From Octopus bimaculoides (Eukaryota): DNA of 32,345 nt. A program made the position numbers and the translations under genes. The notes beneath the pieces were generated by a model. The model worked only from the letters and a program-made list of their open reading frames with translations. It was not told the origin of the DNA and searched no databases. Below, in pieces: positions 1,473 to 32,345 of this stretch; positions within the stretch are counted from its first letter, which is position 1; each line of letters starts with the position of its first letter. The stretch is from NCBI RefSeq assembly GCF_001194135.2, contig NC_069009.1, positions 2,095,642-2,127,986 of the forward strand, in the 5' to 3' direction.

Positions 1473-1550
1473 ATGGCGGAAAAGGCTACACTCGCTTACC
1501 TACAAGGGGCCACTCTCAAGACCTTAGGCGATGACCCTAAGGAGTTTGGG
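1473..1550 (+). CDS. PRXL2A: PRXL2A/SelU coding exon 1 (exon begins at the 1463 acceptor)
   Basis: Acceptor tcttcttcaacag ends at 1462; ATG at 1473; donor gtgagt at 1551; 26 codons. Confidence 0.88.
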
Positions 1551-1647
1551 GTGAGTATGTGTGTGTATATATATATATACACACGTGCACATTTATATGA
1601 AATGATCATGGTTGGCGTTTGTGTATGTTATGTCTGTCTCTCTCTTC

Positions 1648-1690
<43 letters not shown>

Positions 1691-2309
1691 TATATGTCTG
1701 TGTGTGTGTATGTATATGTATGTATATATGTATGTGTATATGTATATATGTGTATATATGTATGTGTATGTATGTATGTATATATGTGTATATATGTATA
1801 TATATATGTATGTGTATATATGTATATATATATGTATGTGTATATGTATATATGTGTATATATGTATGTATATATGTGTATATATGTATGTATATATATG
1901 TATGTATGTATATATATGTATGTATGTCGTCCCGTCTGAGCAAGGATATGTATGTGTGTGTTTGTTTGTTTGTGGCTTGTATATCTGGAGTGTTTCTCAA
2001 ATTTGTTTTTTGTTTTCACAGGCTGGTGAACTCTGGAAGAATAACGGAGCTATCATCATGGTGGTCCGTCGTCCAGGATGATCCATGTGCAGAGAGGTAA
2101 ACACTTCTATCATTTATATATATATATATATATATATCCCATCGTCCTCATCACCACTACTGGAGTGGCTGGCATTAGGAAGGGCATCCAGCCATAGAAA
2201 CCATACCAGAACAGAAAGCGGAACCTGGTACAGTCCATAGCCTTACCAGTTCTGGTCAAACCGTCCAACCCATGCCAGCATGGAAAACGGACATTAAATG
2301 ATGATGACG

Positions 2310-2378
<69 letters not shown>

Positions 2379-5300
2379 TGGGTGGCTGTGTGCTAAATAG
2401 CTTGCTTACCAACCACATAGTTCTGGGTTCAGTCCCACTGCATGGCACCTTGGGCAAGTGTCTTCTACTATAGGCTCAGGCCGACCAAAGCCTTGTGAGT
2501 GGATTTGGTAGACGGAAACTGAAAGAAGCCCGTCGTATATGTGTGTATATATATAGATGTGTGTGTTTGTGTTTGTCCCCATAGCATTGTTTGACAACCG
2601 ATGCTGGTGTGTTTACGTCCCCGTAACTTGACGGTTTGGCAAAAAGAGACCGATAAAATAAGTACTAGGCTTATAAAGAATAAGTCCTGGGGTCGATTAT
2701 GATGATGATGCTGATGATGATGTTATTGATGTTAATACACATGCTGGTCTTCTCTTTTGTTTTTCAGGAAGCGCAAGCGCTGTCCTCTCTGGTGCCTTAC
2801 TTTGATGAACATGGCTTTAACCTTTATGCCGTTGTACACGAATTGTTGGGCACCGAAGAATTCAAATCTTTTTTTTCCGGGGAATTATTTTTGGACGTTG
2901 AAGTAAGTATATATATACCCGCCTCTTCTACCTGTCCTAATTGCTGTTTCTTGTAAACTTGTATGTTGGTTCAGACAAACATGGTCACAAAGACACAGGT
3001 ACACGTAGGCATATATATGTAGAAGACTGGAGAGAAATGAAGGCAGTTCGACAACTGGCACCCATGCCAACGTCGTCTCCTTCATTGGACACGAAACTCG
3101 GCTTGCGAAGACCTGTTGGAGCAAGCGAAAGCGAAACCATGATGGCACCTGTGCCCAGCGTCGCCTTCCTGGCTCTTGCAAAGACGTTCGAGTGAGATCG
3201 TTGCCAGTGCCACTGGACTGGCTCCTGTGCAAGTGGCACCATTTTGTACATACACCAGACATCCACCATTTTGTACATATCGTTGTTGTTGGCACTCCGT
3301 CGCTTACGACGTTGAGGGTTCCAGTTGATCCAATCAACGGAACAGCCTGCTCTTGAAATTAACGTGCAAGTGGCTGAGCACTCCACAGACACGTGTACCT
3401 TTAACGTAGTTTTGATGGGATATTCAGCGTGACACAGAGTGTGACAAGNNNNNNNNNNTGGTGGAAGAGTACAGCAGGGTTCGCCACCATCCCCTGCCGG
3501 AGCCTCATGGAGCTTTAGGTGTTTTCGCTCAATAAACACTCACAACGCCCGGTCTGGGAATCAAAACCGCGATCCTATGACCGCGAGTCCCCTGCCCTAA
3601 CCACTGGGCCATTGCGCCTCCACTGTACATACATCACACATCCCCATTTTGCATGTATGCTACACATCCCCTATTTTGTAAGTATGCCATGCATCCACCA
3701 TTTTGTACATGTATGTATATGGATAAGCATAAATGTATATATAACATTTAATCCCTTTTTTCTTTGTAGAAAACATTTTATGGTCCTAAGAAACGATGGG
3801 CATCTTTTGCAGCACTTCTAAACCCTTTAGTATGGATGAATTTATGTAGAGCGAAAAAGAAAGGCGTAAGTGGTAACACATCTGGTGAAGGGAGACTTTT
3901 AGGGGGTAAGTCATCATCTGTCCTGTTTTTTTTTTTTTGTCACTGGTGTGTGGCCATTCTGGGGACACTGCCTTGAAGGGTTCAACTTAAGTGGTTCTCA
4001 AATGATTTTTCACGTCCCACCAGCACAAGTGCCAGTAAGGTGACGCTGGTTATGTATATATATATATAATAATATATATATACTATGATGGGCTCTGTCA
4101 GATTTCCTCTACCAAATCCACTCACAAGGCTTTGGTTGTTCCAAGGTTATAGGTTATATTAGAAGACACTTCCCCAAGGTACCATGATGAGGGACTGAAC
4201 TCAGAACTATGTGGTTGGGAAGCAAACTTGTACCACACAGCCACGCCAAGTTTATTAAACATATTTTGATATATTGTCTTTCATATCCAGTTTCTGTTTT
4301 ATTTATCCTCCTCAGTTACTTTTTTTTTAATTTACAAAGTTGCATTTTTTAATATACAAAGTTGCAGTCCAGCAGTTTTCAGACTTGTTCAGGTAAAACA
4401 TTAGTTTCAAGAGGCATGTTTTGATGGTAAGGGGATTAATTGTGGGACCAGAGGGGGCCCATACTGAGGATGGTTTGTCATGGATTGTGTCCAGTGGGAT
4501 TGGGTATAGCCATTTCCTTCAATCTGGAATGACAAAAATTGGCAGGTCAGCTTATTAGATTTGTAGCGAGACTAATTTCATAATTGCATGTTCAGACTTG
4601 AGTACTCCCAGAAGGGCTCCATACGCATGTCTCTAATGATTGGTTATGTGACCAGTCATGTGACACTGAAATATTTTGTTGAATCAGGCATTTTGATTGA
4701 TCTAGTTTTACATAGAATACTTAGCTTGTTTCCAATCATGTTGCACAATAGACCACCAGATGCAACAAATTAAAAATGCTCGTCTGAGCCCCTTTTTGTT
4801 AATAAATAGCATGAGGTTTTTCATTTTAATTCAGAGAGGAGAGTTTGTTTTCAGGAAGCTATGTCGCATTTTTCTTTGTTCCTGTTGAACAACTGAGTTG
4901 AAAAACCAACTGTGTATGATTTGAATAATGAACTTCCAAAATAGTTTTCACATCCTGACTGCATTCTGCAAACTAGTCATCTATGACAATCAGTATTTAA
5001 CAGGAAGTATTCAAAGTGCTATTATAGCCATCTCCTTCAATCTGAAATAGCAAAAATTGGTAGGACAGCTTATTAGATGTTGTTGTTGTTGTTGGCACTC
5101 CGTCGCTTACGACGTCGAGGGTTCCAGTTGATCCGATCAACGGAACAGCCTGCTCATGAAATCAACGTGCAAGTGGCTGAGCACTCCACAGACACGTGTA
5201 CCCTTAACGTAGTTCTCGGGGATATTCAGCGTGACACAGTGTGACAAGGCTGACCCTTTGAAATACAGGCACAACAGAAACAGGAAGTAAGAGTGAGAGA

Positions 5301-7999
5301 AAGTTGTGGTGAAAGAGTACAGCAGGGTTCACCACCATCCACTGCCGGAGCCTCGTGGAGCTTTAGGTGTTTTCGCTCAATAAACACTCACAACGCCCGG
5401 TCTGGGAATCGAAACTGCGATCCTATGACCGCGAGTCCGCTGCCCTAACCACTGGGCCATTGCACCTCCACTCAGAGAGCTACTACCTCTGTTAGTAACG
5501 AAGGGACTTCCTTTGGAATGAAAGGCAGATTATATGATGCTCCTGCATGGAAAATAGACAATAAATGATAATGATGATATACTGAAATTACTATAACCTA
5601 TATAGCAATATTTATACAGCAATTTATATAGCAATATAGCAAGGGATTACTATAATTATATAAGATCCATTACTTAGGTGACCAAGTCTGTAGTGGGGAG
5701 GGGTTCAGTCCAAAAGCATAGCTGGTAGTATAAGGATAGGCTGGGTGAAGTTCAGAGAGCTACTACCTCTGATAGTAATGAAGGGACTTCCTTTGGAATA
5801 AGAGGCAGATTATACGATGCCCCTGCATGGAAAATAGACAATAAATGATGATGATGACGATGACGATGATAATATACTAAAATTACTATAATTTAAGACA
5901 GGTAGAAGTTCCTTTCCTAAAAGAGTCTCAAAACTTCTGGAATGCACCTTGTATGCTTAATTTTACCTGCAACTTCTGTTTTGCACATTTGTCTTCAACC
6001 TTTTCCTTTTTCTTGTTTTACAGGAGTTTTCGTAATTGGTCCAGGAGAAGCGGGGATTTTGCTGGATCATCGAGAAAACAAGTTTGGAGACCACGTCAAG
6101 GCGGAGCTGATCAAGTCGGTCGTGGCACAGTTCAGGGGAACGGACAAAGACAAAGGCGGAGAAGGTACGGCAGTTGTGGAGAGCGCCGTTGATGAACCGA
6201 AGAGTGCATTTGGGGGCTTCACTGACATCACCCGTGGCGTGACCGACTCGCTGCAAGATACGGCATCTGGTGCAACGAGTCTGGCCAGCCAAGTGCAACA
6301 GAACGTCACGAGCGGACTGGATGACGCAAAGCAGAGTGCTACTGACGAGCTTGACCGTGCCAAGTCAGGTGTGACAGAAACTGGAAGTCAAATGCAGCAG
6401 GACATAGAGAGCAAGGTGGCTGATGGGAAAAAGAGCATAGCAAGCGGAATTGCCGATGCACGGAAATCAGCAACAGATAGCTACAGCGGCGTGACTAGTT
6501 CAATTGGTGATGCACAGAAAAGTGCAGTGTCGGGATTCAATGAAGCGAAACAGTCTGCAGTAAAAGGATTTGGAGATGTTCGTGGCGGAGTCACAAGTAC
6601 CATCAGTGGCGCACAAGAAAGTGCAGTGTCCGGATTCAATGAAGCGAAACAGTCTGCGACTCAAGGAATTGGCGATATTCGCAGTGGCGTAACCAGCACC
6701 ATTTCTGATACACAGAAAAGTGCAGTCACAGGATTCAATGAAGCGAGGCAATCTGCTGTCAAGGGAGTCGGAGATATCCGCAGCGGCGTGACCAGCACCA
6801 TCTCTGATACACAGAAAAGTGCAGTCACTGGATTCAATGAAGCAAAACAATCTGCTGTCAAAGGAATTGGCGATATCCGCAGCGGCGTGACCAGCACTGT
6901 CTCTGATGCACAGAAAAGCGCAGTCACAGGATTCGATGAAGCGAAACAGTCTGCTGTCAAAGGAGTCGGAGACATTCGCAGTGGCGTGACCAGCACTGTC
7001 TCTGATGCACAGAAAAGCGCAGTCACGGGATTCAACGAAGCAAAGCAATCTGCGGTGCAAGGAGCCAGTGATATTCGCCGAGGCGTGAGCAGCACTGTGA
7101 GTGATGCACAAAAGAGTGCAACATCTGCGTTCAATGAAGCGAAACAGTCGGCTGTCCAAGGAGCCGGAGATATTCGCAACAGCGTGACAGGTGCGATTAG
7201 CGATACACAAAAAAGTGCAGTGTCTGGATTCGATGAAGCGAAGCAGTCGGCCGTGCAAGGGTACAGTGACATTCGTAGCGGAATAAGCAGCACCGCCAGT
7301 GATGCACAGAAAAGTGCAGTCACAGGATTCAATGAGGCGCGAAAATCTGCAACTGACAGCTTTGGTGAAATTCGCGGTGGCGTGACTAGCTCGGTAAGCA
7401 GCGCGCAGAAGAATGTAGTATCTGGAATCAATGATGCCAAACAAACTGCATCCCAGGGCCTTGGTGACATGCAGCAAAAGGTGACAGCCTCTGTTGCTGA
7501 TGTGCAACGGAGCGGAGCATCGAGTTTTTCGTCAGCCAAGCAAGGCCTCGCCTCAGGTGTCGCCGGTGCAAAGGGCAGCTTGAACACTGCCAAGGACGAT
7601 GCGTCGAACACTTTCTACGACGCCAAGCAGAGTCTCGACGACAGCATGTCGTCAACCAAACAGGCCGTCTGCGAGAGTGCAAATGCCGTTCGTTCGGACG
7701 CAGACGCTGCAAAGAACCAAGTCGCAGGCAGCATCCAGTCGGCGAAGGACCTCAGTTCAGAAACTGCAGACAAGGTGAAACAGAGCACGACCACAGAGGC
7801 AGCCGGTTTCAAGGGCACCCTAGACAAGTTCACCAAGGACCTGCCTGGCAAGGAAGATTTCCAAGAGGCCCTAGACATGGCTAAAGAGGTCGGCAAAGAG
7901 GAAATAAAAGATGTCATTGAACAAGTGAAAACCACAGCTGGGACCGCGGTATCGGATTATACGACGCAGTTCACCGATAAGCTTGGTTCCTGGAGTTAA
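1473..7999 (+). CDS. PRXL2A: Peroxiredoxin-like 2A / selenoprotein U (FAM213A family), spliced CDS join(1473-1550,2022-2096,2768-2902,3770-3905,6024-7999) = 2400 nt, 799 aa with Sec at residue 46 and a long C-terminal repeat tail
   Basis: All four introns are GT-AG with polypyrimidine tracts and compatible phases (0,0,0,1). The joined peptide [26 protein letters not shown]|[25 protein letters not shown]|EAQALSSL...GELFLDVE|KTFYGPKKR...GEGRLLG|[25 protein letters not shown] matches recalled PRXL2A motifs (KAALEYL..LKTL, ELW..NGAVIMAVRRPGCxxCREEA, FYGP, GEG..LGGVFVVG, GILLEHREKEFGDKV) colinearly. Confidence 0.93.
1556..1965. repeat. Compound (TA)/(CA)/(TATG) microsatellite in intron 1
   Basis: Direct reading; it explains the YI/HT/CV-rich ORFs here. 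Confidence 0.97.
2022..2096 (+). CDS. PRXL2A: PRXL2A/SelU coding exon 2 with in-frame TGA (Sec) at 2079-2081
   Basis: Acceptor ttttcacag; [27 protein letters not shown]; donor gtaaac at 2097. Confidence 0.92.
2145..2310 (+). mobile_element. Family B retroposon 3' end (..catggaaaacggacattaaatgatgatg tail)
   Basis: Shared with 17330-17450, 18045-18372, 18962-19170 and 31118-31262. Confidence 0.75.
2380..2698 (+). mobile_element. tRNA-derived SINE family C (ggagtggctgtgtggtaag..ccttgggcaagtgtctt..)
   Basis: Copies or fragments also at 4086-4245(-), 11330-11523, 19516-19995, 20606-20825, 23010-23620, 26245-26920 and 32137-32296. Confidence 0.8.
2768..2902 (+). CDS. PRXL2A: PRXL2A/SelU coding exon 3
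   Basis: Acceptor tttttcag; [45 protein letters not shown]; donor gtaagt at 2903. Confidence 0.93.
3282..3622 (-). mobile_element. tRNA-derived SINE family A (Arg-like head), interrupting a ~26-bp minisatellite
   Basis: Minus-strand head GGAGGCGCAATGGCCCAGTGGTTAGGG..ACTCGCGG with A/B-box-like motifs and a (CAA)n tail; multiple copies in this window. Confidence 0.85.
3770..3905 (+). CDS. PRXL2A: PRXL2A/SelU coding exon 4 (missed by the ORF track)
   Basis: Acceptor tttctttgtag; [45 protein letters not shown]+G; donor gtaagt at 3906; phase 1. Confidence 0.92.
5079..5471 (-). mobile_element. SINE family A, near full length
   Basis: Same head, body and tail as the other family A copies. Confidence 0.88.
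5472..5892 (+). repeat. ~130-bp imperfect direct duplication in intron 4 (~5472-5600 and ~5752-5892)
   Basis: cagagagctactacctctg..gaagggacttcctttggaat..catggaaaatagacaataaatgat occurs twice. Confidence 0.85.
6024..7999 (+). CDS. PRXL2A: PRXL2A/SelU terminal exon: end of the Trx-fold domain plus ~615-aa repeat-rich extension
   Basis: Acceptor cttgttttacag ends at 6023; phase 1 completes Gly; open frame continues to TAA at 7997-7999. Confidence 0.88.
6509..7498 (+). repeat. Ten in-frame 99-bp (33-aa) coding tandem repeats, consensus [33 protein letters not shown]
   Basis: Units counted in the translation; exact 99-nt period without frameshifts; degenerate units on both flanks. Confidence 0.95.
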
Positions 8000-8047
8000 A
8001 TAGACCGTGACGATGGCAATAACGACATTGCCAGCGGAAGCTGTTGA
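7997..8047 (+). promoter_or_regulatory. Candidate compact GUGA-type SECIS element
   Basis: GUGA at 8007-8010; helix 8011-8020/8027-8036 (9 of 10 pairs); apical loop begins with AA (8021-8022); GA at 8037-8038; weak lower helix 7997-8003/8041-8047. Helix and loop are shorter than canonical. Confidence 0.4.
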
Positions 8048-8293
8048 TTGGATTATATCACCATCGTCACCATCAGCAGCAAACACACTAACACACACAT
8101 GCAGATGAATATACAAGCACATACACACATGCATACATACACATAAATATAAACGTGTATATATNNNNNNNNNNNNNNNNNNNNNNNNNNNNNNNNNNNN
8201 NNNNNNNNNNNNNNNNNNNNNNNNNNNNNNNNNNNNNNNNNNNNNNNNNNNNNNNNNNNNNNNNNNNNNNNNNNNNNNNNNNNNNNNNNNNNN

Positions 8294-8331
<38 letters not shown>

Positions 8332-9103
8332 GTTTGTATTTATGTATACGTGTATAAACACGCACACACACATATATATACACTTGCATATACACACGTC
8401 TAAATACACACATAGGTACATTGACCCAAAGATATACGTGTAAACACAAAACAAACACATATACTTATAAATGAATACATAAATACATACATATACACAC
8501 ACACGTTTCCAGGAATCAAAAATTATTTATAAAAAATAATGTTGAACAAAATCCATAAAAAAAGAATGGAGAGAAAAAGTATCTAACAACCACCAGAAAT
8601 GTGTAAAATTTAAATGAATGAAGACCACGACGAAGAAGAAGAAGAAGAAGAAAGAGGGGGGAACTCCCCACTCTCCCCTCGTTAGCTCCCCGCTAAAGAA
8701 AAAGAAATTGAACAGTGAAAAAAAAAAGAGAGAAAGAGAGAAAGCAAGACCAGATGCTATAATCTTAACTAATTGGATTCGTTCAAGTTAAGTTACCTCC
8801 CTTTGCCGTCGTCCTCCCTACCTCCCCCTCGCCTTGCCAACCACCACCACCACCACCACCATTNNNNNNNNNNNNNNNNNNNNNNNNNNNNNNNNNNNNN
8901 NNNNNNNNNNNNNNNNNNNNNNNNNNNNNNNNNNNNNNNNNNNNNNNNNNNNNNNNNNNNNNNNNNNNNNNNNNNNNNNNNNNNNNNNNNNNNNNNNNNN
9001 NNNNNNNNNNNNNNNNNNNNNNNATGTTGTTAACGGCGTTGGCTGGACTGTAACTATGACAACAGCAACAACTAGTTGTGTAAGTTTGCTGGGTTAGGCC
9101 GTG

Positions 9104-9142
<39 letters not shown>

Positions 9143-9202
9143 CATGAGTAACGTGTATATGCGTGTGTAGTGTGTTTATGTATGCCTGTGTTTATATGCG
9201 TG

Positions 9203-9250
<48 letters not shown>

Positions 9251-9336
9251 TATATAAGCAAATGTGAAGATATATACTTGTATGCATGCATCTACAAGTG
9301 CGTGTGTATATATCAAAGCATATATATCTGTGTACG

Positions 9337-9380
<44 letters not shown>

Positions 9381-9435
9381 CATGCACATACATACACAGC
9401 CCATATATAATACACATACTACATATATATATGTA

Positions 9436-9473
<38 letters not shown>

Positions 9474-12468
9474 GCAAACATGTACGTGCACTCATAAATA
9501 CACACACACACACACACAGGGATCACACGTCCCAGTTGGTGCCCCAGGCATTTTTCATTATTTCAACTACTTTCCTTAAATACTGGAAACAGAAAGGAAT
9601 CGGCGAGACGAGGAGGAGGAGGAGGAAGAGGAAGACCAAGAAGAAGAAGAGCAAGAGGGATTATCTGTCTGTGCCTCTGTGTATATCCATCTCTCTCTCT
9701 CTCTCTTTATGTGTCCCATGTCTCCGTTAATCTCTGTCCTGTTTATTACGAACGTTTCGTGTCTGTCCGCAATAATCTGCTGTAACGCCGTATACGTGTC
9801 GTTGAGGTGCATTCGAGGCCCCCCACCCGGTTTTTTTTTTCTCGCTCTCTCTCTGGACCAATGTTACCAGTGTGACATCAACCCAACTTTTCCCCACTGG
9901 GTCCACACGCGCGTACGTTCGGTCGGAGTACATTCTGGCCTCACCTGCTTTACATTACCTACCTGCCTAAACTGCCTTCCTGCATGCCTTTTCGTCTGTC
10001 TCTCCGTCTCATAGTGTCCGTCCATCTACGTTTTGTAAGTATGTGAGCGAACGCGTGGCATGCTTGCCAATGTGCCCATCCTTTGGAGCATGCAATTTTC
10101 CAAGAACAAACAGTAAGAAAGTTTAAAGAAAACAAAAATTACAAAAAAAAATTAAAAAATAATAATAATTTCCATGCATTGGTGTTGTAGTTTGGTGCAG
10201 TTTTGTGGTTATTGAGTAGTGGTAGTGATAATGATTATTATTATTGTTATTATTATTATTATCAATGGTTATTGTTATTCCATGCGAGGTCTCACTGTCG
10301 AATGACGGCGCCAGACTAAAAAGTCACTGNNNNNNNNNNNNNNNNNNNNNNNNNNNNNNNNNNNNNNNNNNNNNNNNNNNNNNNNNNNNNNNNNNNNNNN
10401 NNNNNNNNNNNNNNNNNNNNNNNNNNNNNNNNNNNNNNNNNNNNNNNNNNNNNNNNNNNNNNNNNNNNNNNNNNNNNNNNNNNNNNNNNNNNNNNNNNNN
10501 NNNNNNNNNNNNNNNNNNNNNNNNNNNNNNNNNNNNNNNNNNNNNNNNNNNNNNNNNNNNNNNNNNNNNNNNNNNNNNNNNNNNNNNNNNNNNNNNNNNN
10601 NNNNNNNNNNNNNNNNNNNNNNNNNNNNNNNNNNNNNNNNNNNNNNNNNNNNNNNNNNNNNNNNNNNNNNNNNNNNNNNNNNNNNNNNNNNNNNNNNNNN
10701 NNNNNNNNNNNNNNNNNNNNNNNNNNNNNNNNNNNNNNNNNNNNNNNNNNNNNNNNNNNNNNNNNNNNNNNNNNNNNNNNNNNNNNNNNNNNNNNNNNNN
10801 NNNNNNNNNNNNNNNNNNNNNNNNNNNNNNNNNNNNNNNNNNNNNNNNNNNNNNNNNNNNNNNNNNNNNNNNNNNNNNNNNNNNNNNNNNNNNNNNNNNN
10901 NNNNNNNNNNNNNNNNNNNNNNNNNNNNNNNNNNNNNNNNNNNNNNNNNNNNNNNNNNNNNNNNNNNNNNNNNNNNNNNNNNNNNNNNNNNNNNNNNNNN
11001 NNNNNNNNNNNNNNNNNNNNNNNNNNNNNNNNNNNNNNNNNNNNNNNNNNNNNNNNNNNNNNNNNNNNNNNNNNNNNNNNNNNNNNNNNNNNNNNNNNNN
11101 NNNNNNNNNNNNNNNNNNNNNNNNNNNNNNNNNNNNNNNNNNNNNNNNNNNNNNNNNNNNNNNNNNNNNNNNNNNNNNNNNNNNNNNNNNNNNNNNNNNN
11201 NNNNNNNNNNNNNNNNNNNNNNNNNNNNNNNNNNNNNNNNNNNNNNNNNNNNNNNNNNNNNNNNNNNNNNNNNNNNNNNNNNNNNNNNNNNNNNNNNNNN
11301 NNNNNNNTATATATATATATATATATGTTTGTGTCTCTGTCCCCGCCACCATCGCTTGACAACCGATGTTGGTGTGTTTATGTCCCCTTAACTTAGCGGT
11401 TTCGGCAAAACAGACCGATAGAATAAGTACTGGGCTTACAAAGAACAAGTCCTGGGGTCGATTTGCTCGACTAAAAGCGGTGCTCCAGCATGGCCACAGT
11501 AAAATAACTGAAACAAGTAAAAANNNNNNNNNNNNNNNNNNNNNNNNNNNNNNNNNNNNNNNNNNNNNNNNNNNNNNNNNNNNNNNNNNNNNNNNNNNNN
11601 NNNNNNNNNNNNNNNNNNNNNNNNNNNNNNNNNNNNNNNNNNNNNNNNNNNNNNNNNNNNNNNNNNNNNNNNNNNNNNNNNNNNNNNNNNNNNNNNNNNN
11701 NNNNNNNNNNNNNNNNNNNNNNNNNNNNNNNNNNNNNNNNNNNNNNNNNNNNNNNNNNNNNNNNNNNNNNNNNNNNNNNNNNNNNNNNNNNNNNNNNNNN
11801 NNNNNNNNNNNNNNNNNNNNNNNNNNNNNNNNNNNNNNNNNNNNNNNNNNNNNNNNNNNNNNNNNNNNNNNNNNNNNNNNNNNNNNNNNNNNNNNNNNNN
11901 NNNNNNNNNNNNNNNNNNNNNNNNNNNNNNNNNNNNNNNNNNNNNNNNNNNNNNNNNNNNNNNNNNNNNNNNNNNNNNNNNNNNNNNNNNNNNNNNNNNN
12001 NNNNNNNNNNNNNNNNNNNNNNNNNNNNNNNNNNNNNNNNNNNNNNNNNNNNNNNNNNNNNNNNNNNNNNNNNNNNNNNNNNNNNNNNNNNNNNNNNNNN
12101 NNNNNNNNNNNNNNNNNNNNNNNNNNNNNNNNNNNNNNNNNNNNNNNNNNNNNNNNNNNNNNNNNNNNNNNNNNNNNNNNNNNNNNNNNNNNNNNNNNNN
12201 NNNNNNNNNNNNNNNNNNNNNNNNNNNNNNNNNNNNNNNNNNNNNNNNNNNNNNNNNNNNNNNNNNNNNNNNNNNNNNNNNNNNNNNNNNNNNNNNNNNN
12301 NNNNNNNNNNNNNNNNNNNNNNNNNNNNNNNNNNNNNNNNNNNNNNNNNNNNNNNNNNNNNNNNNNNNNNNNNNNNNNNNNNNNNNNNNNNNNNNNNNNN
12401 NNNNNNNNNNNNNNNNNNNNNNNNNNNNNNNNNNNNNNNNNNNNNNNNNNNNNNNNNNNNNNNNNNNN

Positions 12469-12699
12469 GGGATATTCAGCGTGACACAGAGTGTGACAAG
12501 GCTGACTCTTTGAATTACAGACACAACAGAAACAGGAAGTAAGAGTGAGAGAAAGTTGTGGTGAAAGAGTACAGCAGGGTTCGCCACCATCCCCTGCCGG
12601 AGCCTCGTGGAGCTTTAGGTATTTTCGCTCAAGAAACACTCACAACGCCCGGTCTGGGAATCGAAACCGCGAGTCCGCTGCCCTAACCACTGGGCCTCC
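12469..12699 (-). mobile_element. SINE family A, partial (runs into a gap)
   Basis: Near-identical to the corresponding part of the 5079-5471 copy. Confidence 0.82.
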
Positions 12700-13756
12700 A
12701 CCATTATAGAGTAACTAGCAGCTAAACCCGGTCGGTTTAGCATTCGCCTTGTTTGGGCACGCTTACGTTAAAAAACAATTTTAGAATGACTTTTTTCTGT
12801 CAAAACGCTAAAAATAACTGACCGACAAAAGAAAAACCAACCAAATCAAAAAATAAACCCACATAGTAAGTGAAAAAAGATGCAAAACAACAGAAATATA
12901 AAAAAAATAAAACAAAAATTAAAAGAAATAAAAAAATAAGTCAGATATCCTTTAAATTTTCAAAGGTCAAAAAACAACAAAAAAATGAATAACCGGAAAA
13001 CATGAAATACCTCAACCTCAATGCGAAATATTACACAAAATTTAAAAACCAAAAAGAAAAAAAAAAAACCCATCTGAAACTGGAAAAAAAATAACTGAGA
13101 TACTACAAAGAATGACTTCACAAAAAATCCCACTTCCACTGCACGCACACACGAACACATTCACATACCCCCTTTTACATACATACACATATTCACAGAG
13201 TTGAAATGCTGTTTGATTTATTTTTTCAGCGTACAATTTTCATCATCCCACTACCAAGTCTGACATCACCCCTTCCTTCCTTATTCATAAACACAAGAGT
13301 ATTATTATAGTAGATTATCTCGGTAACCATGGGAGCCATGAAAAAAATACAAAGCCTTGCATCAGCTCCAGATCATTCTACACATCTGTGTAATTTTTCG
13401 CGCAATTCCACCCAGCCGTTTGACCATGAATCCCAAGACACGAAAGAATCGCCCATAGATAAAGAAACTGGAATTGATCTAATCAAAGTATAGTAATTAA
13501 GACGATTAGTATTAATGAGATTAAAAGATATAATGGATCCTTTTGGTTTGACGGGCAATTATCTGTTCTATAATACAAAATATACAAGTATACGAAGTTT
13601 GAAAGTGTTTCGGTACCAAAAACACTACATAAAACATTAATGAAAAATGTTTCCCGTCAAACCAAAAGGATCCTAAATATTTACTTACAATATATTTACA
13701 CGAGTTCAACTGCCTTACAGACGAAGCTGAATATAGGTTCCACAATATGAACATTG

Positions 13757-14368
13757 TGTGTTGTTTGTTGGCACTCCGTCGCTTATGACGACGAGGGTTC
13801 CAGTTGATCCGATCAACGGAACAGCCTACTCGTGAAATTAACGTGCAAGTGGCTGAGCACTCCACACACACGTGTACCCTTAATGTAGTTCTCGGGAATA
13901 TTCAGCGTGACACAGAGTGTGACAAGGCTGACCCTTTGAAATACAGGCACAACGGAAACAGGAAGTAAGAGTGAGAGAAAGTTGTGGTGAAAGAGTACAG
14001 CAGGGTTCGCCACCATCCCCTGCCGGAGCCTCGTGGAGCATTAGGTGTTTTCGCTCAATAAACACAACACCCGGTCTGGGAATCGAAACCGCGAGTCCGC
14101 TGCCCTAACCACTGGGCCATTGCGCCTCCACAGAGTGTGACAAGGCTGACCCTTTCAATTACAGGTACAACAGAAACGGGAAGTAAGAGTGGGAGGAAGT
14201 TGTGGTGAAAGAGTACAGCAGGGTTCGCTACCATCCCCTGCCGAAGCCTCGTGGAGCATTAGGTGTTTTCGCTCAATAAACACTCACAACGCCCGGTCTG
14301 GGAATCGAAACCGCGATCCTATGACCGCGAGTCCGCTGCCCTAAGCACTAGGCCGTTGCGACTCCACA
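13757..14368 (-). mobile_element. SINE family A full copy plus adjacent tandem partial copy
   Basis: Copy at ~13757-14130 is followed directly by a second head-containing ~240-bp segment joined at ccacagag. Confidence 0.85.
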
Positions 14369-18044: not shown

Positions 18045-18372
18045 TCATCATCATTGTTTAACGTCCACTTTCCATGCTAGCATGGGTTGGACGATTTGAC
18101 TGGGGACTGGTGAAACCAGATGGCTACACCAGGCTCCAATCTGATCTGGCAGAGTTTCTACAGCTGGATGCCCTTCCTAATGCCAACCACTCCAAGAGTG
18201 TAGTTTATATATATATATATATCATCATCATCGTTTAACGTCCGCTTTGCATGTTAGCATGGGTTGGACAATTTGACTGAGGACTGGTGAACCGGATGGC
18301 TACACCAGGCTCCAATCTGATCTGGCAGAATTTCTACAGCTGGATGCCCTTCCTAACGCCAACCACTCCAAG
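18045..18372 (-). mobile_element. Two tandem family B 3' fragments
   Basis: catcatcgtttaacgtcc..ttccatgctagcatgggttggac..ggatgcccttcctaa occurs twice. Confidence 0.78.
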
Positions 18373-19539
18373 AATGGGAGACAAACAGAACGTCTGTAAT
18401 TCTTCAGTTATTGAACTGGTCAATAACTGATGAAGAATTGCAGACCTTCCATTTGTCTCCTGTTCGTTTTTACATTCAGTATATGTTATGCTGCTTGTTT
18501 ATACATTTTTCATTTATATATATACATATATATATTAGCTTAAAAGCTGCACTTTGAGCAGATTTTTAAGCTAGCTCCTGTGTAGGGCTAATTGGGGCTG
18601 TGGCNNNNNNNNNNNNNNNNNNNNNNNNNNNNNNNNNNNNNNNNNNNNNNNNNNNNNNNNNNNNNNNNNNNNNNNNNNNNNNNNNNNNNNNNNNNNNNNN
18701 NNNNNNNNNNNNNNNNNNNNNNNNNNNNNNNNNNNNNNNNNNNNNNNNNNNNNNNNNNNNNNNNNNNNNNNNNNNNNNNNNNNNNNNNNNNNNNNNNNNN
18801 NNNNNNNNNNNNNNNNNNNNNNNNNNNNNNNNNNNNNNNNNNNNNNNNNNNNNNNNNNNNNNNNNNNNNNNNNNNNNNNNNNNNNNNNNNNNNNNNNNNN
18901 NNNNNNNNNNNNNNNNNNNNNNNNNNNNNNNNNNNNNNNNNNNNNNNNNNNNNNNNNNNNNTACAGCTGGATGCCCTTCCTAACGCCAACCACTCCAAGA
19001 GTGTAGCTTATATATATATCATCATCATCGTTTAACGTCCGCTTTCCATGCTAGCATGGGTTGGACGATCTGACTGAGGACTGGTGAACCAGATGGCTAC
19101 ACCAGGCTCCAATCTGATCTAGCAGAGTTTCTACAGCTGGATGCCCTTCCTAACGCCAACCACTCCAAGAATGGGAGACAAACAGAACGTCTGTAATTCT
19201 TCAGTTATTGAACTGGTCAATAACTGATGAAGAATTGCAGACCTTCCATTTGTCTCCTGTTCGTTTTTACATTCAGTATATGTTATGCTGCTTGTTTATA
19301 CATTTTTCATTTATATATATACATATATATATTAGCTTAAAAGCTGCACTTTGAGCAGATTTTTAAGCTAGCTCCTGTGTAGGGCTAATTGGGGCTGTGG
19401 CCCAAAACTAACGAGAGCTAAATAGCATGACTATAATACATCTATAATGACTATATACCCTTTTGGTGTTTGATCAGAGGTTGAGGATGTATGAGAATTA
19501 ATTCTGCAATGTGTAGGAGTGGCTGTGTGGTAAGTAGCT

Positions 19540-19849
19540 TGTCGAAATAGGCCCCGAGTTGTCACAGCAGGCTTGCCTGTGGACAGCAAAAAAGTTGCTC
19601 CGGGAGGTGTAGGAGGCTTAAGTGCCTATCCATTGATTGTTAAATTGTGTTATTTTAATTTTGATTTAATATTGATTTGATTGTATGTAAATTGAATTGT
19701 TAGAGAACAGTGATTTCGAGGTGTTGTCACTCGGCGGGCGTCAAATACCCCTCTCATTTATAACATTCACATTCCATTAATGTAAATGTCCAACCCACAT
19801 TGCTTCTTTGCTTCTATGTAAGGCCTTCATGGCCAATTTGAATGAAATA
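19540..19849 (+). mobile_element. 5'-truncated non-LTR retrotransposon 3' end inserted in a SINE head
   Basis: Flanked by an 8-bp duplication aagtagct (19532-19539 / 19850-19857); short ORF end followed by a UTR ending in aataa(a); the SINE sequence resumes after it. Confidence 0.6.
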
Positions 19850-21619
19850 AAGTAGCTGGCTTACCAACCACATAGTTCTGGGTTCAATCCCACTGTGTGG
19901 CACCTTGGGCAAGTGTCTTCTACTATAGCCTTGGGCTGATCAAAGCCTTGTAAGTGGATTTGGTAGACGGAAACTGAAACAAGCCTGTCGTACATGTGTG
20001 TGTCATCATCATCATCATCATCATCGTTTAATGTCCGCTTTCCNNNNNNNNNNNNNNNNNNNNNNNNNNNNNNNNNNNNNNNNNNNNNNNNNNNNNNNNN
20101 NNNNNNNNNNNNNNNNNNNNNNNNNNNNNNNNNNNNNNNNNNNNNNNNNNNNNNNNNNNNNNNNNNNNNNNNNNNNNNNNNNNNNNNNNNNNNNNNNNNN
20201 NNNNNNNNNNNNNNNNNNNNNNNNNNNNNNNNNNNNNNNNNNNNNNNNNNNNNNNNNNNNNNNNNNNNNNNNNNNNNNNNNNNNNNNNNNNNNNNNNNNN
20301 NNNNNNNNNNNNNNNNNNNNNNNNNNNNNNNNNNNNNNNNNNNNNNNNNNNNNNNNNNNNNNNNNNNNNNNNNNNNNNNNNNNNNNNNNNNNNNNNNNNN
20401 NNNNNNNNNNNNNNNNNNNNNNNNNNNNNNNNNNNNNNNNNNNNNNNNNNNNNNNNNNNNNNNNNNNNNNNNNNNNNNNNNNNNNNNNNNNNNNNNNNNN
20501 NNNNNNNNNNNNNNNNNNNNNNNNNNNNNNNNNNNNNNNNNNNNNNNNNNNNNNNNNNNNNNNNNNNNNNNNNNNNNNNNNNNNNNNNNNNNNNNNNNNN
20601 NNNNNTATATATATATATATATGTGTGTGTCTGTGTTTGTCCCCCCAACATCACTTGACAACCGATGCTAGTGTGTTTACGTCCCCCGTAACTTAGTGGT
20701 TCGGCAAAAAAGAGACCGATACAATAAGTACTAGGCTTACAAAGAATAAACCCTGGGGTCGATTTGCTCGACTAAAGGCGGTGCTCCAGCATGGCCGCAG
20801 TCAAAAGACTGAAACAAGTAAAAGAGAGAGAGTAAGAGTAATGCAATCATTCTATGATTCCAGTCCCAAGTTGAATTCCAATTTGTCTGATCTCAATCTG
20901 AAATTAATGAATGTCATTTATCTCCCCCTCCATCTCTGACATCATCTGACAAATTGCCAAACCAAGATTGGGGGAATCAGCCAAACTTTTTTACCTGCTA
21001 GAAATAGCAGCCCAAATGCTTTAAAATCAGATCCCAGTACTGGATGTACAAGAACCAAATGAAGGGCAGATCTTCAATCCCAGGATCATCCTAATTCCAA
21101 AAAGATATATGTCTATGCAGAATAGGCTGAGATATAGGAGGTCCTGGACAGACAGAATTTTGCTTTAATTACTATAGATATAAGAGGTTAAGAAGTTGGT
21201 TGTTAAAAATGTATGTATTGTCCTTCTGTTTTCCATGATAAATTTCTTCAAAAATTTTCTTATTTTTCTAATATATATATATATATACCGAAGTTCAGAA
21301 ATAGCAGCTATTTCTGAACTTCGGTATGTGGTGAAGCAACTGTTGCTGATCCCTTAATTATGTTTATAAATTTATAAGAACTTTTAAATAAGTTCTTCAC
21401 CGATAATGGTGTTTACATACCGAAGGGCTTGGTAAAAATTATTAATTCTTAATTTATTAATAAATTAATAATCCTTTACCCTTTTATTTATAATAATATA
21501 TATATATATATATATTGATAGGAAGGACAACAAAAGAAAGAAAGAGACCTCGATATTATGTATATATATATATATATATATATATCTGTAAAAATATGTG
21601 ACACTTATTCAGTAGCCAT

Positions 21620-24263: not shown

Positions 24264-24819
24264 NNNNNNNNNNNNNNNNNNNNNNNNNNNNNNNNNNNNN
24301 NNNNNNNNNNNNNNNNNNNNNNNNNNNNNNNNNNNNNNNNNNNNNNNNNNNNNNNNNNNNNNNNNNNNNNNNNNNNNNNNNNNNNNNNNNNNNNNNNNNN
24401 NNNNNNNNNNNNNNNNNNNNNNNNNNNNNNNNNNNNNNNNNNNNNNNNNNNNNNNNNNNNNNNNNNNNNNNNNNNNNNNNNNNNNNNNNNNNNNNNNNNN
24501 NNNNNNNNNNNNNNNNNNNNNNNNNNNNNNNNNNNNNNNNNNNNNNNNNNNNNNNNNNNNNNNNNNNNNNNNNNNNNNNNNNNNNNNNNNNNNNNNNNNN
24601 NNNNNNNNNNNNNNNNNNNNNNNNNNNNNNNNNNNNNNNNNNNNNNNNNNNNNNNNNNNNNNNNNNNNNNNNNNNNNNNNNNNATGCAGCACAGAATTTT
24701 GTCTGTGAACACGTCGCGGTCACAAAGCGACGAAAATATTTTGACAGATTAAATTTAAATGTTGAAGTTTTTGTGTGTTATTGTAAATGGCTTATAAACA
24801 CCTTCCACGCTGCAATTGT

Positions 24820-24983
24820 TTATATATACATATATATATATATATACATATATATATTTATACATATATAGATATACATATATACATATACATATATACA
24901 TATACATATATATATATATACATATACATATATACATATACATATATATATATACATATACATATATACATATACATATACAT

Positions 24984-25070
<87 letters not shown>

Positions 25071-25077
25071 TATATAC

Positions 25078-25108
<31 letters not shown>
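24820..25108. repeat. (TA)/(TACA) microsatellite
   Basis: Direct reading of the sequence. Confidence 0.97.
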
Positions 25109-27415: not shown

Positions 27416-28339
27416 TTACAAGAACATGTCTTCGAAGTAGGACTCGAATTCTTCGTTCCTACTCTTCGCAACTTCCACTTTAGCCGGGCCCTGCCACACA
27501 GAAGAGGAACCACAACCGGAATNNNNNNNNNNNNNNNNNNNNNNNNNNNNNNNNNNNNNNNNNNNNNNNNNNNNNNNNNNNNNNNNNNNNNNNNNNNNNN
27601 NNNNNNNNNNNNNNNNNNNNNNNNNNNNNNNNNNNNNNNNNNNNNNNNNNNNNNNNNNNNNNNNNNNNNNNNNNNNNNNNNNNNNNNNNNNNNNNNNNNN
27701 NNNNNNNNNNNNNNNNNNNNNNNNNNNNNNNNNNNNNNNNNNNNNNNNNNNNNNNNNNNNNNNNNNNNNNNNNNNNNNNNNNNNNNNNNNNNNNNNNNNN
27801 NNNNNNNNNNNNNNNNNNNNNNNNNNNNNNNNNNNNNNNNNNNNNNNNNNNNNNNNNNNNNNNNNNNNNNNNNNNNNNNNNNNNNNNNNNNNNNNNNNNN
27901 NNNNNNNNNNNNNNNNNNNNNNNNNNNNNNNNNNNNNNNNNNNNNNNNNNNNNNNNNNNNNNNNNNNNNAGTAGGTCAAGTAATCGTTGATGAACTTCTT
28001 GTGCCTCGAATAGGCGTCCATGCTGACGATCTTGAAGCGGTGGAGACGAGATAACTCGGCAGAGCGCTCATTGTACAAATGCTGTTTCTTCTGGCCGAAA
28101 CCGTCTTCGCGCCTCTGCAGTTTCCCTTCCAAGTGGCGGCTGGACTTCGGGCGTTTCCGCCGTCGTTTCTTCGCCTTCGTAGACGGACGCGAAAGCGAAG
28201 CGCCCGCTTCGTCCGAGTCGCGCCTATCGTCGTCCGCTGCTGACCGTCGTGTGTTTCCGCTAATCTCCGGATCACTGTCGAAATCGGAATCGTAATAGCT
28301 CCCGCGATGAACTTTCACAAAGTTTGTCTTTTCCGACAT
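27416..28339 (-). CDS. FRA10AC1: FRA10AC1 homolog; middle hidden by gap 27523-27969
   Basis: The N-terminal part has YDSDFDSD and RFKIVSMDAYSRHKKFINDYLTY (recalled human: GYDSDFSD, RFHLIAMDAYQRHTKFVNDYILY). The C-terminus VWQGPAKVEVAKSRNEEFESYFEDMFL* matches recalled human LWKGP...KSQEEEFDEYFQDLFL*. Confidence 0.92.
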   Translation of the reverse strand: MSEKTNFVKVHRGSYYDSDFDSDPEISGNTRRSAADDDRRDSDEAGASLSRPSTKAKKRRRKRPKSSRHLEGKLQRREDGFGQKKQHLYNERSAELSRLHRFKIVSMDAYSRHKKFINDYLTYXXXXXXXXXXXXXXXXXXXXXXXXXXXXXXXXXXXXXXXXXXXXXXXXXXXXXXXXXXXXXXXXXXXXXXXXXXXXXXXXXXXXXXXXXXXXXXXXXXXXXXXXXXXXXXXXXXXXXXXXXXXXXXXXXXXXXXXXXXXXXXXXXXXXXXSGCGSSSVWQGPAKVEVAKSRNEEFESYFEDMFL

Positions 28340-29364: not shown

Positions 29365-29687
29365 TGGAGGCGCAATCCAGTGGTTAGGGCAGCAGACTCG
29401 CGGTCATAGGATCGCGCCACGAGGCTCGGGCAGGGGATGGTGGCGAACCCTGCTGTACTCTTTCACCACCACTTTCTCTCACTCTTACTTCCTGTTTCTG
29501 TTGTGCCTGTAATTCAAAGGGTCAGCCTTGTCACACTCTGTGTCACGCTGAATATCCCCGAGAACTTCGTTAAGGGTACACGTGTCTGTGGAGTGCTCAG
29601 CCACTTGCACGTTAATTTCACGAGCAGGCTGTTCTGTTGATCGGATCAACTGGAACCCTCGACGTCGTAAGCGACGGAGTACCAACA
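29365..29687 (+). mobile_element. SINE family A with internal deletion of the B-box region
   Basis: The head jumps from gatcgcg to ccacgaggctc; the remainder matches family A. Confidence 0.82.
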
Positions 29688-32136: not shown

Positions 32137-32296
32137 GGAGTGGCTGTGTGGTAAGTAGCTTGCTTACCAACCACATGGTTCTGGGTTCAGTCTCACTGCG
32201 TGGTACCTTGGGCAAGTGTCTTCTTCTATAACCTCGGGCTGACCAAAGCTTTGTGAGTGGATTTGGTAGACGGAAACTGAAAGAAGCCCGTCGTAT
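32137..32296 (+). mobile_element. SINE family C head and core
   Basis: Near-identical to the 2380 and 19516 copies. Confidence 0.8.
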
Positions 32297-32345
32297 ATAT
32301 ATATATATATATATGAAACCAGATGGCTACACCAGGCTCCACTCT

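Follow-up and report, generated by a model that had tools for sequence, protein, structure and literature searches.

A 32,345-nucleotide stretch of the Octopus bimaculoides genome (assembly GCF_001194135.2, contig NC_069009.1, positions 2,095,642 to 2,127,986 of the forward strand; hereafter the window, in whose numbering all positions are given) holds a five-exon gene of the selenoprotein U (SelU)/PRXL2A family at 1473–7999 on the (+) strand, with canonical AG/GT splice sites throughout. The joined exons form a coding sequence of 2400 nt and 799 codons in which one internal TGA occurs, at 2079–2081, and the product would be a 799-residue chimeric selenoprotein in which residues 1–180 are a SelU/PRXL2A domain with a selenocysteine (Sec)-x-x-Cys motif and residues 181–799 an extension dominated by tandem 33-residue repeats with the periodicity of a long amphipathic helix. 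A SelU/PRXL2A protein with a giant 33-mer amphipathic tail is unprecedented; the literature search found no paper describing one, nor one describing a cephalopod selenoproteome. The favoured explanation, to which somewhat less than an even chance is assigned, is a Sec oxidoreductase anchored to a lipid–water interface through a long, reversible amphipathic helix of its own.

Assignment of the gene to the Sec-type SelU/PRXL2A proteins, which had been claimed in an original prediction made from the nucleotide sequence alone, is well supported. The Pfam profile PF13911 (AhpC/TSA_2) matches spliced residues 1–189 with 56.9 bits against a cutoff of 27, and database homologues, named peroxiredoxin-like 2A or FAM213A, show 45–59% identity (the best 55–59%, with E-values down to 3e-59); the thioredoxin (Trx)-fold part comprises ~180 residues, contributed by exons 1–4 and the first 38 residues of exon 5. 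The TGA at 2079–2081 is aligned exactly with the first Cys of the homologues' RRPG-C-x-x-C-REEA motif, the octopus gene reading RRPG-TGA-SMCREEA. Several close relatives are present in databases as open reading frames (ORFs) of 133–143 aa beginning MCREE, as expected where a gene caller restarts after an in-frame TGA, and three relatives' contigs (L002, L003 and L004) are spliced cDNAs with a TGA in frame at the same place, within a U-x-M-C motif. The spliced octopus protein aligns to each of these three cDNAs in one collinear block (residues 3–175 to 3–179), which provides independent support for the exon model. Likeness to the family (PRXL2A, FAM213A, PAMM) lies in the fold profile, in 45–57% identity of the N-terminal 180 residues to other members, in a (U/C)xxC at the conserved place, and in a U-x-M-C context like that of Sec-type relatives. 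The differences lie at the two ends: vertebrate and gastropod members have an N-terminal hydrophobic anchor, whereas exon 1 here is without one, and the family form is a single domain of ~190–230 aa ending soon after the fold, whereas the octopus chain is predicted at 799 aa.

All five exons are on the (+) strand. Exon 1 (1473–1550) begins with the ATG at 1473, aligns with homologue N-termini and ends at the donor GGG|gtgagt; exon 2 (2022–2096) carries the in-frame TGA as the Sec codon of the UxxC redox motif; exon 3 (2768–2902) has 77% DNA identity to a genomic contig (L001, Logan ERR3431203) encoding P0039, with 80% protein identity in the same comparison, the match being confined to this exon and the introns on either side failing to align; exon 4 (3770–3905) is followed by a phase-1 donor; and exon 5 (6024–7999) is entered through the acceptor ttttacag|GA at 6023/6024 and closed by a TAA stop at 7997–7999. 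The (+) frame is open across the exon 5 acceptor, as an ORF of 685 aa at 5942–7999. Exon 5 contains no run of N and no frame break, and its GC content of 51–53% over 6024–7999 contrasts with the AT-rich window, which is filled with TA/CA microsatellites and broken by 12 N runs (assembly gaps); GC and third-position GC (GC3) of the tail are near those of the Trx exons (GC3 0.50 in the tail, 0.45 in the Trx exons) and well above those of flanking sequence. Upstream of the exon 1 ATG, an acceptor-like site, tcttcttcaacag|CC at 1452–1472 (1462/1463), lies in a frame open to the ATG. A hydrophobic N-terminal anchor exon was looked for upstream and none was found within the window; a further upstream exon, possibly encoding the PRXL2A membrane anchor, may lie outside it.

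The Trx domain passes into the tail without a stop codon, in the same exon and the same frame. Its end had been placed near residue 180, with the exon predicted to continue for ~615 aa; the measured tail is 619 codons, from residue 181 to the TAA. The start of exon 5 (6024–6139) encodes the last 38 residues of the Trx fold, comprising the C-terminal strands and helix of PRXL2A/SelU and ending VVAQFRG, and is followed by a linker of 23 residues (6140–6208) that sits at the stop-codon position of other family members and includes the final proline (residue 200) ahead of the helix. An 11-mer repeat region (6209–7792; residues 204–731) encloses ten in-register 33-residue units (6506–7495; residues 303–632), and a charged, predicted helical C-terminus without repeats, ending GSWS, occupies 7793–7999 including the stop codon.

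Among relatives, the domain ends differently. Chains in an alignment of ten homologues end 6–15 residues after the fold's last helix, and the longest C-terminal extension in a relative is a low-complexity segment of ~50 residues in a Priapulus protein (P0033). Named homologues with a complete C-terminus are 189–243 aa long and every complete C-terminus ends soon after the fold; vertebrate PRXL2A matches are 213–228 aa (P0007, P0011, P0012, P0016), in agreement with the ~220 aa stated in the original prediction. Two longer entries, an unnamed protein product of Ranitomeya (P0017, 323 aa) and P0031 (263 aa), have extra length at the N-terminus only and a normal short C-terminus. Inside exon 5, no donor-like site matching at least 8/9 consensus positions and no acceptor-like site were found, the best internal donor being AAG|GTACGG near 6165 with 7/9 consensus positions. 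The in-frame fusion of Trx domain and tail is well supported in the gene model, and the mature mRNA would carry both parts.

Tandem Repeats Finder (TRF) reports a 99-nt period at 6508–7339 (8.4 copies, 78% matches), and the same spacing appears as a direct-repeat family (D5). At the protein level, ten 33-residue units stand in perfect register, each composed of three 11-mers, with degenerate 11-mers on both sides; both the number and the construction of the units are as originally described. The 11-mer profile is x-(D/E)-(A/I)-(Q/R/K)-(Q/K/S)-(S/G)-(A/V)-(V/T)-(S/Q/K)-(G)-(F/V/I), with apolar residues at positions 3/7/11, an acidic residue at 2 and basic residues at 4/5; the pattern first reported (hydrophobic 2/6/10, acidic 1, basic 3/4) was correct in kind and offset by one residue. 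Likewise borne out was the description of units rich in S/T/A/G/V and lacking Pro, Cys and Trp: S+A+G+V+T amount to 59.7% of the ten-unit array (Ser 16.7%, Ala 13%, Gly 10%, Val 9%, Thr 8.2%), P, C, W and H are all absent, and Phe accounts for 3.3%; each unit has about one Phe and one Ile. Residues S+T+G+Q+N together reach ~46%, and the proline-free stretch runs over 548 residues (201–748).

Translation and constraint of the tail are indicated by the repeat copies differing mostly at synonymous sites. Between units, the mean proportion of synonymous differences (pS) is 0.62, near saturation, and that of nonsynonymous differences (pN) 0.19, for a dN/dS of ~0.17; pS exceeds pN in 9/9 adjacent unit pairs, and pN/pS in the sense frame (0.27) is the lowest of the six frames. 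This pattern indicates that the repeats are old, translated in the sense frame and under purifying selection at the protein level. Antisense ORFs of 316–335 aa over the repeats are not considered coding, as the lowest pN/pS falls in the sense frame, and are regarded as by-products of the repeats.

An 11/3 helical wheel and moment calculation, a check proposed with the original prediction, showed that the tail has the period, and the separation of polar and apolar faces, of an 11/3 amphipathic helix, far beyond chance. On the Fauchère–Pliska scale, as in HeliQuest, and with 1000 shuffles for comparison, the coherent hydrophobic moment (muH) calculated over all ten units reaches its maximum at 98 degrees, which corresponds to an 11/3 helix; muH at 98.18° is 0.316 over the ten units (330 residues; shuffles 0.038±0.019) and 0.274 over residues 204–731 (528 residues; shuffles 0.030±0.016), with 0/1000 shuffles near the observed value, which stands more than 14 standard deviations above them, and the moment is 0.05 at 100 degrees and 0.01 at 160 degrees. 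Over ~450 residues (about residues 214–665) the apolar stripe holds a constant phase, after which it rotates by ~90 degrees. On the wheel, positions 3, 7 and 11 make up the stripe, next to which come position 8 and the basic position 4, and the acidic position 2 is central in the polar face; the layout is class-A-like. Mean hydrophobicity (H) is 0.127 over the ten units, within a range of 0.11–0.13. A single-sequence AlphaFold2 model places helices in the degenerate flanks and gives a predicted local distance difference test score (pLDDT) of 30–40 over the central repeats, which fits a segment disordered until bound; the C-terminal 70 residues are predicted helical, at low confidence, and have no sequence match to a 4-helix bundle.

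To our knowledge, Plin4 (perilipin-4) is the only giant repetitive 33-mer amphipathic helix known. The human protein has 29 tandem 33-mers without indels that form a weak 11/3 amphipathic helix, unfolded in solution, whose droplet binding rises with length and depends on subtle hydrophobicity and net positive charge, and it is by far the longest of the amphipathic helices compared in Table 1 of the study describing it (Čopič et al. 2018, PMC5889406). In both Plin4 and the octopus tail, 99-nt repeats encode units of 33 residues (3 x 11) that stand in tandem, free of indels and of proline, and both are rich in Gly, Ala, Val and hydroxylated residues with approximately +/-3 charges per unit. The hydrophobic moment per 33-mer is 0.29–0.35 in the tail, against 0.257 in Plin4, 0.30 in alpha-synuclein and 0.35 in Plin3, and the hydrophobic fraction is 0.32 against 0.35 in Plin4. 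Other values diverge: mean H is 0.127 (ten units) against 0.293 in Plin4; the aromatic fraction 0.034 against 0.002, with Phe occurring about once in each unit and making up 0.3% of Plin4; the charged fraction 0.21 against 0.15; and the net charge per unit about +0.3 (about 0 to +1) against +1. Where Plin4 consists mainly of Thr (20.9%), Gly (15.4%), Val (14.9%) and Ala (10.7%), the main residues of the tail are Ser (17%), Ala (13%), Gly (10%), Val (9%) and Thr (8%), with Ser in place of Thr and more Gln and acidic residues. The tail further differs in having 10 clean units (~14–16 with degenerate ones) against 29, in being attached to an enzyme domain, and in lacking a match to the Perilipin (PAT) Pfam family. 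The label 'perilipin-4-like' given at first therefore stands for architecture and physics (33-mers, 99-nt period, 98 degree moment) and falls for family and composition; the resemblance is a sound analogy, not family membership.

Other amphipathic repeat proteins share narrower features with the tail. Apolipoproteins A-I/A-IV/E (PF01442) and apolipophorin-III have the class-A layout and an 11/22-mer periodicity; the tail differs from apolipoproteins in lacking proline-punctuated 22-mers, in a gene model without a signal peptide or hydrophobic leader, and in being much less hydrophobic and less charged. Group 3 late embryogenesis abundant (LEA) proteins (PF02987) and alpha-synuclein (PF01387) are likewise built of tandem 11-mers, disordered in solution and amphipathic-helical on demand; the tail has no KTKEGV motif and is ~five times longer than the synuclein helix.

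Homology of the tail to any known family was rejected, the matches being of low identity and, where inspected, repeat-driven. A word-indexed search of 5.8 billion proteins returned a single match at 23% identity and no orthologue; by sequence this match looks like a phage tail tape-measure protein, although its recorded Pfam domains do not say so. An exhaustive phmmer search of 1.84 billion cluster representatives returned 314 matches (best E=2.7e-30), all at 36% identity or less and mostly at 14–30%, and the ~20 of these that were inspected were repeat-driven, comprising phage tape-measure proteins, bacterial 11-mer proteins and translated junk repeats. NCBIfam and the PDB gave nothing significant for the tail, the best PDB match being ApoA-IV at E=0.5, and the exon 5 product had no match at E<=1 to the Pfam families Perilipin (PF03036), LEA_4 (PF02987) or Synuclein (PF01387). 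It does reach 90.2 bits on Apolipoprotein A1/A4/E (PF01442; cutoff 90), a match that probably reports 11/22-mer periodicity and not ancestry, because phage tape-measure proteins score 70–127 bits on the same profile; a near-cutoff match to SF-assemblin was also recorded (29 bits against 30.6). As a separate observation, an unrelated protein of 1461 aa (P0041) has a Mbeg1-like domain and more than 10 clean 33-residue repeats (AVGSFVNGVKNVVTDAAKSAIEGAVTAIKSTAK), and is another enzyme-like domain joined to a long 33-mer amphipathic array.

In the explanation favoured here, residues 181–799 would be a lineage-specific extension that arose at the ancestral stop codon and expanded as a 99-nt unit was amplified. 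The Gly/Ser-rich, proline-free run of ~550 residues is probably disordered in solution and, on a lipid–water interface, could fold into one continuous 11/3 amphipathic helix of ~70–80 nm, the length that 470–550 fully helical residues would span at 0.15 nm per residue. Candidate interfaces are the monolayer of lipid droplets, lipoprotein or yolk particles, and membranes with loose packing, into which an Ala/Val/Ile/Phe stripe would face with Lys/Arg at its flanks and Asp/Glu on the opposite side. Many weak contacts may sum, as in Plin4, to keep the Sec redox domain at the surface, with oxidised lipids or proteins of that surface as its possible substrates; helix induction, binding to lipid and the substrate are all predictions of this proposal.

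Several observations weigh against a Sec enzyme tethered to lipid in this way. In Plin4, a 4T->S mutant (H 0.256, moment 0.248) and a mutant of net charge -1 lost droplet binding at 4-mer length, the 4T->S protein being cytosolic (PMC5889406). The H of 0.127 per octopus unit lies below that of the 4T->S mutant, though its moment is higher (0.316), the net charge of about +0.3 per unit compares with +1 in a protein where charge mattered, and, by that study's account, the single Phe in each unit would make binding less selective for droplets. The larger moment, the one Phe and one Ile per unit and a length of at least 10 units may compensate for low H and charge, or may shift binding toward bilayers. 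The AlphaFold2 model is of low confidence overall (mean pLDDT 51). Protein, profile and metagenome searches produced no orthologue of the tail, and a search with the start of exon 5 together with a metagenome scan produced no fusion in relatives, in databases that do not include the proteins of this species; the only related genomic DNA found was L001, which covers exon 3 alone. The fusion is so far seen in one genome only.

To these points is added the question of the Sec insertion sequence (SECIS). None was found in the octopus gene by Rfam at gathering or at relaxed (E<=10) thresholds, and the sole SECIS-like candidate downstream, from two pattern/energy scans, is a weak GUGA hairpin at 8007–8040 (+), which begins 8 nt past the stop codon and consists of GUGA-C, a 9-bp stem, the loop AACGAC and then G-GA-A. 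Its apical loop is minimal, it is not recognised by Rfam, and assembly gaps begin at 8165, 166 nt past the stop codon. The silence of Rfam carries little weight because the SECIS_1 model is insensitive for the SelU family: in a control on the relatives' SelU cDNAs it called a SECIS in 1/3, at 28.6 bits (gathering score 35). The positions listed for these cDNAs are 1418–1474 in L002 and 1967–2014 in L004, and the crude energy of the octopus hairpin (-12.8) is near that of the Rfam-supported SelU SECIS of L002 (-13.1). A perfect 10-bp inverted repeat at 8008–8017/8059–8068 (GTGACGATGG / CCATCGTCAC) overlaps the hairpin and is preferred in the minimum free energy fold (z = -2.5). Within the gene itself, a SECIS-pattern match (GTGA...AA...GA) was noted at 2026–2082, with its 3' GA inside the Sec TGA and 2 mismatches in a 9-bp stem; the pattern would place a hairpin directly upstream of the recoded UGA, and is probably due to chance.

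Production of the tail apart from the selenoprotein is an unlikely alternative, in which SelU mRNAs end or splice close to residue 185 (the weak donor near 6165 is one possible site) and the repeat protein comes from a transcript starting in intron 4. At 5942, an ATG in frame with exon 5 and 27 codons ahead of its acceptor opens a hydrophobic leader (5942–6023), of which 26 residues could serve as a signal peptide for a secreted, exchangeable-apolipoprotein-like protein; that the Pfam Apolipoprotein match reaches its cutoff, that no canonical SECIS was found after the long ORF, and that all relatives found have the short form would fit such an arrangement. The leader is, however, the translated polypyrimidine tract of a strong acceptor, where 27 stop-free codons are not unusual; the donor near 6165 matches only 7/9 consensus positions and no acceptor-like site follows it; and the frame of the tail is the one set by exon 4. 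Selection alone does not discriminate between the isoforms.

Equally, it is improbable that the tail serves as a hydrophilic LEA-like or disordered protective or spacer segment, acting as a molecular shield, in water holding or in condensates, with its 11-mers mattering only under drying, freezing or osmotic stress. The very low mean hydrophobicity (0.11–0.13), the ~46% share of S+T+G+Q+N and the predicted disorder of the central repeats would suit this role; 11-mers are a hallmark of group 3 LEA proteins, and one phage tape-measure match to the tail also scores on LEA_4, so that the repeat classes overlap. On the other hand, LEA_4 itself has no match in the tail at E<=1, the charged fraction of 0.21 is roughly half of that typical of group 3 LEA proteins, and a phase-locked Phe/Ile/Val stripe maintained over ~450 residues under selection exceeds the needs of a shield.

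Self-association of the tail, as a hendecad (11/3) coiled coil or bundle that would serve as a rigid, extended stalk or scaffold for multimerising or placing the redox domain, is considered quite improbable. The apolar positions fit an a/e/h pattern, the best database matches are to phage tape-measure and other fibrous repeat proteins (with SF-assemblin just below its cutoff), and lateral packing has been proposed for Plin4 itself (PMC8064757). Against a stable helix in solution stand Gly at 10–12% and Ser at 17%; Ala, Val and Thr would dominate the core, the AlphaFold2 model contains no confident bundle, and no solved coiled coil was matched (best PDB E=0.5). Finally, a functionless read-through (a stop lost into a coding-looking satellite), a decaying pseudogene or an assembly artefact is disfavoured and highly improbable, as, although the one assembly showing the tail has many gaps (12 N runs), with the SECIS not confirmed and no orthologue among the 1.84 billion representatives, exon 5 is free of N runs and frame breaks, none of the five exons or their splice sites is damaged, GC and GC3 resemble the Trx exons' values and lie well above the flanks, and the units are old (pS ~0.6) yet conserved as protein (pN 0.19), so that old, selected repeats constitute a strong argument against a satellite or dead read-through.

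The remainder of the window holds features of other kinds. Interspersed repeat families, SINE (short interspersed element)/transposon-like and 70–98% identical, occupy introns and flanks of the gene, with copies at 3286–3623, 5089–5471, 12486–12723, 13765–14367 and, inverted, 29414–29687, also at 2382–2555, 19837–20010 and 32140–32313, and at 18114–18511 and 19009–19308. On the (-) strand, an ORF at 27416–28339 that is broken by an N run encodes a Ser/Arg/Lys-rich charged product (MSEKTNFVKVHRGSYYDSDFDSDPE...DAYSRHKKFINDYLTY) with no match in Pfam or the PDB; it probably belongs to an adjacent gene, as one of its exons. Most of the 12 N runs are bordered by TA/CA microsatellites, and Rfam matches to mir-297, mir-466 and mir-3149 (8100–9550 and 24800–25100) fall below the gathering score in such microsatellites and were rejected as microRNA genes.

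For annotation, the gene illustrates how selenoprotein genes can be missed or cut short: if gene calling stopped at the TGA, the only product on record would be an orphan repeat protein of 752 residues. In the most far-reaching form of the lipid-surface explanation, which is somewhat unlikely, an invertebrate, probably a cephalopod, evolved a giant Plin4-type 33-mer helix independently, and this became fused to a Sec oxidoreductase that would coat droplets, yolk or lipoprotein and repair oxidised lipids or surface proteins in place. If true, the array would be a second, independent 33-mer (99-nt) array, with Ser, Gln and Phe for Thr and Gly, and a natural experiment on the requirements for coating lipid. 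SelU/PRXL2A proteins are widespread and their substrates poorly known; fusion to a lipid-surface module would hint at their site of action, as a 'Rosetta-stone' fusion pointing to a lipid-surface function for this orphan family generally.

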